The position numbers were made by a program, and so were the translations under genes. Below the pieces are notes generated by a model. That model worked only from the letters and a program-made list of their open reading frames with translations. It had not been told where the DNA came from and did not search any database. DNA of 64,000 nt. It comes from Camelus ferus. Its lineage: Eukaryota. Of this stretch, positions 49,621-52,600 are shown piece by piece; position 1 is the first letter of the stretch, and each line of letters starts with the position of its first letter. The DNA lies in NCBI RefSeq assembly GCF_009834535.1, contig NC_045712.1:25916001-25980000 (forward strand), written 5' to 3'.

Positions 49621-52600
49621 GGTGGCATCTTGGCAGTGCGTGGGATTTAAGGCTAGAAACTCTGGGCACATGGAGTTGTTAGGGTGCCAGGGACGCTGAT
49701 GACAGCTAGGTGGCAGAAAAGGTCCCACGTCTCCATCTCTACCTTGTTTTCTGCCTTGCCTGTGACACTCGGGCTAGGTCATTGCTCTCTCTACCCAAAT
49801 ACCTTATGAGGTAAATTATGGGGAAGGCACTTCAGACTGCCCTAAGCCTGACCCTTACTCCCAATTCGCTCCCATCCCCTATAGTGACTTTCTCATTCTC
49901 CCTGGGTACATCGACTTCACTGCAGACCAAGTGGTGAGTATGGACAGGACTTGGAACCTGAGCATCATGGCTGGGTAAGGTGCTGCTGTCCTGTCTTGGC
50001 TACCTCAGCAGATTGGGTTGGGAGGTGGATTCTGTGGAAGAGTCTTACTGGCATGCAGGTCATAGAGGTCACCTGTTTTGTGGGGTATATGGCACCACCC
50101 TGAGGTACATGAGGTGCTTTTCCACATTAGTTGGCCTTACTTCTTTAGGACCTGACCTCTGCTCTGACTAAAAAGATCACTCTGAAGACCCCATTGGTTT
50201 CCTCACCTATGGACACAGTCACAGAGGCTGGGATGGCCATAGCAATGGCGGTGAGCATAATGGCATGTGAAGGCAGAAGCCTGGGCCCCATCTCTCTTTC
50301 CCAAAGGCATACAATCATTCCACTCTTTGTCACTTTTTCCCTGTCTTCTGTGTGTCCTGCAGCTTACAGGTGGTATTGGCTTCATCCACCACAACTGTAC
50401 ACCAGAATTCCAGGCCAACGAAGTTCGGAAAGTGAAGGTCAGAGAGCAAGGATCGCGGTCAAGAGCTCCTGGGAATTGCACTGAGTTGGAGTGGGGGATT
50501 TGTTCTCTTAATTTATAATCCTTTTCTCCCACTGTGAGGGTTCAATTCCTGAGAAGAGCCTGAGACCTTGTGTCCTAAAGCAACAGAAGATGACCAGGTG
50601 GACAGTGCACCCACCCACCTAGCTCTGGGTTTGAGGTGTTTGTGTGATCTGATCCTGTGGCACTGCCAAAGCAGAAGCTAGCACAGATCCCAGGCTTCAG
50701 ACCAAGAGCCTAATGAAAATGATTCAGAAATGCCATTTCTCACCATCCTTTCCAGAAATACGAGCAGGGATTCATCACGGACCCTGTGGTCCTCAGCCCC
50801 AAGGATCGAGTGCGGGATGTCTTTGAAGCCAAGGCCCGGCATGGATTCTGTGGTATCCCCATCACCGATACAGGCCGCATGGGGAGTCGCCTGGTAGGCA
50901 TCATCTCCTCAAGGGACATTGATTTTCTCAAGGAGGAGGAGCATGACCGGTTTTTGGAAGAGGTAGGTGCCACTAACAGCACAGCCAAGCTGACAGCCCA
51001 GGCTAAAGAAAAGGAGCCTTCTGTTGCCTGAATGGCATCTCTGAGGGCCTCTGCTGTCCAGGAAAATGAGTCCCCAGCCAAGTTTCCTGACCCTTTTGTG
51101 GGGTTCCTGCATCCCCTCCTCACTGGAGGCTTTCAGTCTGCCCAAATATTTGCCAGCATACATGTCATATTTTTTTTCCACATTGAGTGGAAGCAGTGCT
51201 CAAGGACCAACTTTAGCCTCCTCTTGCTATTATTGCTCTGGTGTGTCTCTCCACAGTGTAATAGGCTGCTCCGTGTCCCTGACTTCTTTCTACTCCTCTT
51301 GCCACTAGATTGCTGCAGACTGTTGCATTTACTTAAGGAGGGTGGTCTAGGTGCAGGTGTGTGAATATGGTGGTCTTTGGAACCTCACCCCTGAGTTAGG
51401 GCAGGATCTCTTGGGAGGTGTGGTCTCTGATTGGCCCTTCCTCACAACTCCACTCCCTCCTAGATCATGACAAAGAGGGAAGACTTGGTGGTAGCCCCTG
51501 CAGGCATCACACTGAAGGAAGCAAATGAAATTCTGCAGCGCAGCAAGAAGGGTGAGTCCTAGAGGTAGGAAGGGTTTTGGAACCAAAGACCAAGGTCCTG
51601 ATTCATGTCCTGCACTGCCCCCAGGGAAGTTACCCATTGTAAATGAAGATGATGAGCTGGTAGCCATCATTGCCCGGACAGACCTGAAGAAAAACCGAGA
51701 TTACCCACTGGCCTCTAAAGATGCCAAGAAGCAGCTGTTGTGTGGAGCAGCCATTGGCACTCATGAGGATGACAAGTATCGGCTGGACTTGCTAGCTCAG
51801 GCCGGTGTGGACGTGGTGGTTTTGGTGAGCTGCTGCATAGGTGGGGTGGGGCAGTAGGAGCAGCTGCCATAACACAGTCTCACTGGGACTTCTTCCTGTC
51901 CCAGGACTCTTCCCAGGGAAACTCCATCTTCCAGATCAACATGATCAAGTACATCAAAGAGAAATACCCCAGTCTCCAAGTCATAGGAGGCAATGGTAAG
52001 ACAAGACTGGGTATTGAAGGACATGGGGCGACAGAGGGGGAGATAGGCTCCCACCTAGACTTTCATGTGAGCCTTTCCCTGTTCCTCACTGCAGTGGTCA
52101 CGGCTGCTCAGGCCAAGAACCTCATTGATGCTGGTGTAGATGCCCTGCGGGTGGGGATGGGCAGTGGCTCCATCTGCATCACCCAAGAAGGTAAGAAGAT
52201 GCTTCGGCAGGGCCCTTAGCCCCACATGCCCTGGAGCCAAGTGCTCTTTTGGGAACTGCATTGAGTCCTCCAATAGGGGTAGCCCCAGGGCCAGTGAGGC
52301 CCCTTAGATGGGTGACATGCTGGAAGCAAGACGAGCTCTCGTCATTCCTCACCTGCCACTTCCCCCTCGCCTAGCCTGGCCTCCCGGCTCCTGCTCCGCG
52401 CCCTCTCTAAACTCTGGTCTGTTTGTTTTATTTAGCGGCTCCCAAGATCCCTCCAGACATAAAGTCCCACAGCCCCAAATGCCCTTCTACTGTCACGGGC
52501 TGCTATAGTAAGTCTGGCCCGGCACAGTGGCCCGGCCTAGCTGCCCACTGCCCGGCTGCTTGGTTGACTGTAGCTGTAGCTCCCGGAGTTTGTGGTGCTG

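Follow-up and report, generated by a model that had tools for sequence, protein, structure and literature searches.

The gene IMPDH2 encodes the rate-limiting enzyme of guanine-nucleotide synthesis, which is also the target of mycophenolate, and its locus in Camelus ferus raises a question in two parts: does its ninth intron hold a coding exon, and, if so, what would that exon do to an enzyme whose catalytic cysteine is encoded by the exon just before it? The gene was rebuilt in full from the sequence of the window, i.e. the whole stretch of 64,000 nucleotides that was analysed. With the cassette, exon 9b, included, the IMPDH2 coding region runs from ATG to stop at 49354..54072 on the forward (+) strand, in 15 exons with a 538-aa translation, and all the introns are of the GT-AG type. 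Intron 9 is the longest of them at 984 nt, the next largest being 501 and 433 nt. It is flanked by exon 9 (52095..52190, +; 96 nt), which codes for the catalytic Cys, and by exon 10 (53175..53318, +; 144 nt), which have the same sizes as the human upstream and downstream exons, respectively. Inside this intron lies exon 9b (52436..52507, +), 72 nt long, of phase 1-1 and free of stops; one of its two alternative frames holds a stop. The acceptor AG is found at 52434-35 and is preceded by a pyrimidine/U-rich tract (ctctggtctgtttgttttatttag), and the donor GTAAGT (52508..52513, +) is the same in all eight loci compared. The original prediction had described an in-frame 72-nt exon of phase 1-1 with a U-rich acceptor and a GTAAGT donor, within the longest intron and at the loop of the catalytic Cys, and each of these features was confirmed in the sequence. 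Upstream of IMPDH2, the QRICH1 region of the window contains runs of N amounting to 1917 bases in total (18362-18509, 30588-30730, 31071-31208, 32601-33092, 41650-42255, 48055-48202 and 48723-49029).

The cassette enters the reading frame through a split codon. Exon 9 ends in ...GGC TCC ATC TGC ATC ACC CAA GAA G (ICITQE + G), followed by GTAAGA, so that its last base opens the split codon, and exon 10 opens with TG CTG GCC, the last two bases of that codon coming first; when exon 9b is spliced in, the junctions read G|CG...TAT A|TG. With the exon included, 25 residues stand where V336 was, and the protein is 24 aa longer. The insert begins five residues past the catalytic Cys331 and three past T333, within the mobile catalytic loop, leaves G326-E335 intact and keeps a hydrophobic residue (M or I for V) ahead of LACGRPQ. 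It is rich in Pro, Ser, Thr and Lys, and its camel and human versions contain two Cys. The product of the 15 exons is identical over all 538 residues to Camelus dromedarius IMPDH2 isoform X1 (XP_010967502.2), a computed RefSeq model that carries no experimental characterisation, and equivalent 538-aa 'isoform X1' models exist for many vertebrates. Elsewhere in IMPDH2, a whale isoform (P0163 vs P0156) is missing the nine residues DLTSALTKK where exons 2 and 3 meet (near 49933/50149), which suggests a further alternative splice site.

An IMPDH2 'exon 9b' reportedly stands on the list of Nakamori 2013 as a splicing biomarker of myotonic dystrophy. IMPDH2 is among the published DM1 alternative-splicing genes, and Table S1 of Wagner 2016 (PMC5082313) gives one IMPDH2 skipped-exon event, at hg19 chr3:49063757-49063852 @ 49063428-49063499 @ 49062559-49062702, the exons of which (96, 72 and 144 nt) match camel exons 9, 9b and 10 exactly. 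The human exon has a mean PSI of 0.72 (sd 0.06, n=11) in control tibialis anterior vs 0.36 (n=44) in DM1, and the fit in Table S3 of the same paper gives it a PSI_min of 0.14, a PSI_max of 0.78 and a slope of +3.2 against inferred free MBNL (PMC5082313). The exon-containing form of IMPDH2 is the one scored as correctly spliced in the MARINA trial paper of 2026 (PMC13330057). The association of IMPDH2 exon 9b with mis-splicing in myotonic dystrophy, which the original prediction had put forward, was therefore correct, as borne out by the Wagner 2016 event, the DM1 gene list and the MARINA paper. The insert in the predicted human isoform XP_016861838.1 matches that of camel at 24 of 25 residues. 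Judged by exon layout and sequence, the camel exon is the orthologue of the known IMPDH2 'exon 9b', already published as a disease splicing marker, and is not a discovery. Across exon 9, intron 9 (52191-53174 of the window) and exon 10, eleven small RNA-labelled runs (0.4-0.85 billion letters each) hold 93% of the sampled words, which would fit either frequent retention of intron 9 or carry-over of DNA.

How far the exon extends beyond camel and human was followed in proteins and in genomic loci. A search of cluster-representative proteins with exon 7 led to an insert-bearing IMPDH2 model of a bird, and a region search was then made around that insert. In more than 90 protein clusters, 25 residues take the place of V336, and these clusters cover tetrapods (mammals, birds, lizards, snakes, turtles and a caecilian), coelacanth and lungfish, ray-finned fishes (gar, eels and many teleosts) and cartilaginous fishes (sharks, rays and the elephant shark). 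At the genomic loci of bat, bird, lizard, gar, zebrafish and elephant shark, exon 9b is always 72 nt long, has AG before it and GTAAGT after it, and is open in the same phase. The camel exon is real and lies well past chance expectation, since seven other vertebrate loci have the same exon of 72 nt between AG and GTAAGT. Loss of the frame or of the splice sites in other mammals, which the original prediction had named as the observation that would speak against it, was decisively contradicted, as exon 9b is kept through the jawed vertebrates. Across 52 distinct inserts, positions 6-7 (PP), 13-15 (SPK) and 22 (G) are invariant; V20 and the M or I at the end are nearly so. SPK occurs in every vertebrate insert recovered; its invariance is partly set by the filter used to collect the inserts, and no related insert without SPK was seen. 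These alignments indicate purifying selection on the protein sequence of exon 9b, and the conservation of the insert from shark to mammal implies that it does something.

The region search yielded no IMPDH1 protein with a related insert among its matches, and a 103-aa junction peptide gave no match among short protein fragments, a set whose length range excludes full-length isoforms. At the phase-1 intron position of exon 9b, several IMPDH1 models and a Xenopus laevis IMPDH2 model (P0244, P0261, P0265, P0268) contain 25-30 unrelated residues, which are likely to be either intron read-through in the gene models or independent exons. The IMPDH2 isoforms of cyprinids (zebrafish L005/L006; P0229-P0234) have an extra segment of 12 residues (ALFQNLAKTVLE or ...IDPK) just ahead of the exon 9b peptide, which suggests a further mini-exon within this intron. 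In bat, the deposited gene model (L004:3500-3900, P0178) begins the cassette 21 codons upstream (GTRPSRTLSSTGLEPSALRGTT...); since the locus retains the canonical AG and an intact 72-nt exon, the acceptor of the model was probably mis-called.

Traces of the insert were also found outside the vertebrates, with similarity that ranged from clear to absent when compared with shuffled sequences. A Ciona isoform carries 15 additional residues at the site of the vertebrate insert, and the last eight of these, STVSGSFM, match the end of a ray insert exactly, with a score that none of 2000 shuffles reached. The amphioxus isoforms carry ...SPRQPATVVTGRAL, with SPR in place of SPK, and here 74 of 2000 shuffles reached the score; the kinship of this insert with the vertebrate exon is suggestive only. 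At this intron position, inserts of 21-27 residues also occur in isoforms of echinoderms and hemichordates, with no detectable sequence similarity. Their homology to the vertebrate exon was unsupported by shuffling, the position of the intron alone being in common. An IMPDH of an unidentified eukaryote from a JGI metagenome contig (P0315, 530 aa) has an 18-residue insert at the same site that ends in RVTGSYL and resembles the vertebrate exon (4 of 2000 shuffles reached the score).

Conservation of exon 9b is not restricted to the protein. Between camel and bird, the nucleotide identity of exon 9b is 0.93, vs 0.86 for exon 9 and 0.74 for exon 10, and the proportion of synonymous differences (pS) is 0.06, vs 0.52 and 0.87, respectively. 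The camel-lizard and bird-lizard pairs follow the same pattern, with exon 9b more conserved in DNA than the exons that flank it. These comparisons indicate that the synonymous sites of exon 9b are also constrained in amniotes, as is typical for regulated alternative exons. The constraint reaches into the intron on both sides. The pyrimidine-rich 3' splice region of the cassette (52406..52435, +; tctaaactctggtctgtttgttttatttag), i.e. the 30 nt before the acceptor, is alignable across amniotes (mammal, bird and lizard), and so is a block downstream of the donor (52540..52582, +; GCTGC.CA..GCCC..CTGCTTG.TTGA), which we regard as a candidate MBNL-responsive enhancer. This block contains three YGCY motifs, at 52542, 52549 and 52557 (+35, +42 and +50 from the donor), and its CTGCTTG.TTGA part is conserved in amniotes. 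The first 100 nt past the donor hold four YGCY, at about the 95th percentile of the local background and hence a modest enrichment, and the bird loci have fewer YGCY within the same distance. GCAUG (RBFOX) motifs were absent within 250 nt downstream of exon 9b in every species compared, and no Rfam family was found across the IMPDH2 gene.

Binding of MBNL downstream of an exon is an established cause of its inclusion, and the YGCY block of camel fits an MBNL-promoted inclusion of exon 9b. We propose that MBNL, acting on the conserved YGCY block approximately 35-55 nt past the donor, would promote inclusion of exon 9b in differentiated muscle, and that the loss of free MBNL in myotonic dystrophy would then lead to skipping of the exon. 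Overall, the observations are best explained, with high confidence, by the camel exon being the orthologue of the known exon 9b, an ancient coding cassette that, in human, depends on MBNL and is present in most IMPDH2 mRNA of adult skeletal muscle.

What the insert does to the enzyme has to be approached from the structures and the enzymology of the form without it. The original prediction had stated that it knew of no biochemical characterisation of the exon, and none was found: the splice variants discussed in the two IMPDH reviews consulted are those of IMPDH1 only (one of the reviews does not contain the word muscle), and no chain with the insert is present in the PDB (2026 copy), in which the IMPDH2 entries match in two pieces that flank the insert and all represent the 514-aa form. 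AlphaFold2 models of the 538-aa bird isoform had a mean pLDDT of 50.7 and 51.8 with alignments of 37 and 70 sequences, which were too shallow, and the models were unusable. IMPDH2 mRNA is high in skeletal muscle (PMC12666484). In octamers compacted by GTP, opposing tetramers interact through their active sites and finger domains; the cavity of the octamer is lined by the active-site face, which comes up against the opposing tetramer when the enzyme is in its GTP-compressed, inhibited state (PMC9375230). The insert would extend a loop on this face, and, because the face meets the opposing tetramer in the compressed state, 24 additional residues there could alter the dynamics of the Cys loop and/or GTP feedback or compression. 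In addition, the conserved Ser-Pro-Lys could serve as a site for a proline-directed kinase, and the Ser/Thr-Pro motif makes a phospho-switch, as the original prediction had also suggested, possible. Our preferred reading, to which we lean with reservation, is that the muscle enzyme stays active with the insert but is re-tuned and perhaps regulated by phosphorylation. As to its physiological purpose, we can only speculate that such an enzyme might limit how much of the large IMP pool in contracting muscle drains into guanylates, the rise of IMP with exercise being familiar from the purine nucleotide cycle.

Lying so near Cys331 and T333, the insert could, however, simply abolish activity, and this was at the core of the original prediction. 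The 538-aa form would then be catalytically dead or strongly impaired, a built-in attenuator that lowers IMPDH activity in post-mitotic muscle either by co-assembling with 514-aa subunits or by replacing them. The place of the insertion, five residues past the nucleophile and three past T333 in a mobile loop, speaks for this, as does the human finding that inclusion peaks at high MBNL, i.e. in mature, non-dividing fibres. Nevertheless, the breaking of a loop needs neither the PP, SPK and TVTG that have been conserved for more than 400 million years nor the hydrophobic residue kept at 336, and the loop residues upstream of the insertion are all unchanged. We consider an inactive subunit unlikely for these reasons. 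The same invariant PP and SPK in a Pro/Ser/Thr/Lys-rich segment are typical of short linear motifs and would suit a docking or assembly element, which leaves catalysis little changed and instead recruits a muscle partner or alters the packing of filaments or octamers; the retinal variants of IMPDH1, which work through filament architecture and not through the active site, offer a precedent. The insert, though, is situated within the catalytic loop and not at a terminus, and it has no known partner, so that a role mainly in docking or assembly appears improbable to us.

A redox switch through the two cysteines of the insert, as the original prediction had entertained, is disfavoured and has very little probability left. 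Both cysteines are present in camel and human, but position 16 holds Cys in no group beyond tetrapods, coelacanth and lungfish (ray-finned and cartilaginous fishes have T, L or S there), and Cys at position 23 is confined to mammals; as neither is conserved, the conserved function cannot depend on them. Although an AG...GTAAGT pair around a short open frame can arise by chance in an intron of 984 nt, it is hardly credible that exon 9b is a chance pseudo-exon, or a non-coding 'poison' or decoy exon without a protein product, given the lack of any stop or frameshift, the same length and frame in eight loci from shark to mammal, the 72% inclusion in human muscle and the annotation of the isoform in many species. 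An exon that induces NMD is ruled out by the 72 nt, the open frame and the full 538-aa product, and a lineage-specific exonised repeat is ruled out by the presence of exon 9b from the elephant shark to mammals.

Approximately 70% of the IMPDH2 mRNA in healthy human leg muscle carries the 24-residue insert beside the catalytic Cys, and this share is reduced in myotonic dystrophy. The splicing and the enzyme literatures on IMPDH2 are still separate; the structures describe the 514-aa form, and the marker exon belongs to the 538-aa form. The exon itself is already known, from annotation in Camelus dromedarius and many other species and from the myotonic dystrophy marker papers; what deserves bench work is the effect of the insert on the enzyme. 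It is conceivable, albeit doubtful, that a catalytic-loop cassette more than 450 million years old, shared with tunicates and perhaps with chordates as a whole, turns the predominant IMPDH2 of adult striated muscle into an enzyme distinct from the other form and maybe regulated by phosphorylation. If this were true, the kinetics, GTP feedback, filament behaviour and mycophenolate sensitivity of the 538-aa form would differ from those of the 514-aa form on which the existing biochemistry, structures and pharmacology are based, and the loss of exon 9b in myotonic dystrophy would alter the handling of guanylates and IMP in muscle.

The closest known system is human IMPDH2 exon 9b, which shares with the camel exon its intron, the 96/72/144-nt layout and the phase, and is the same exon in another mammal; the human peptide differs in its first insert residue, which is V in human and A in camel. 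At the level of splicing, exon 9b resembles the MBNL-activated adult-muscle cassettes ATP2A1 exon 22, INSR exon 11 and CLASP1, and the human IMPDH2 exon is found in the same table as these, with inclusion down in DM1 and up with inferred MBNL. Like such cassettes, exon 9b has YGCY downstream of its donor, to which MBNL may bind, but in camel the enrichment is modest, and it is weaker in birds. At the level of the protein, the retinal variants IMPDH1(546) and IMPDH1(595) are likewise products of tissue-specific splicing that adds residues to an unchanged canonical core, and in these variants splicing tunes GTP feedback and filament architecture. They are, however, retina-specific products of the other paralogue, consist of N- and C-terminal extensions and have solved structures, whereas exon 9b of IMPDH2, for which the PDB has no structure, places its insert in the catalytic loop itself and, in human, is used in muscle.
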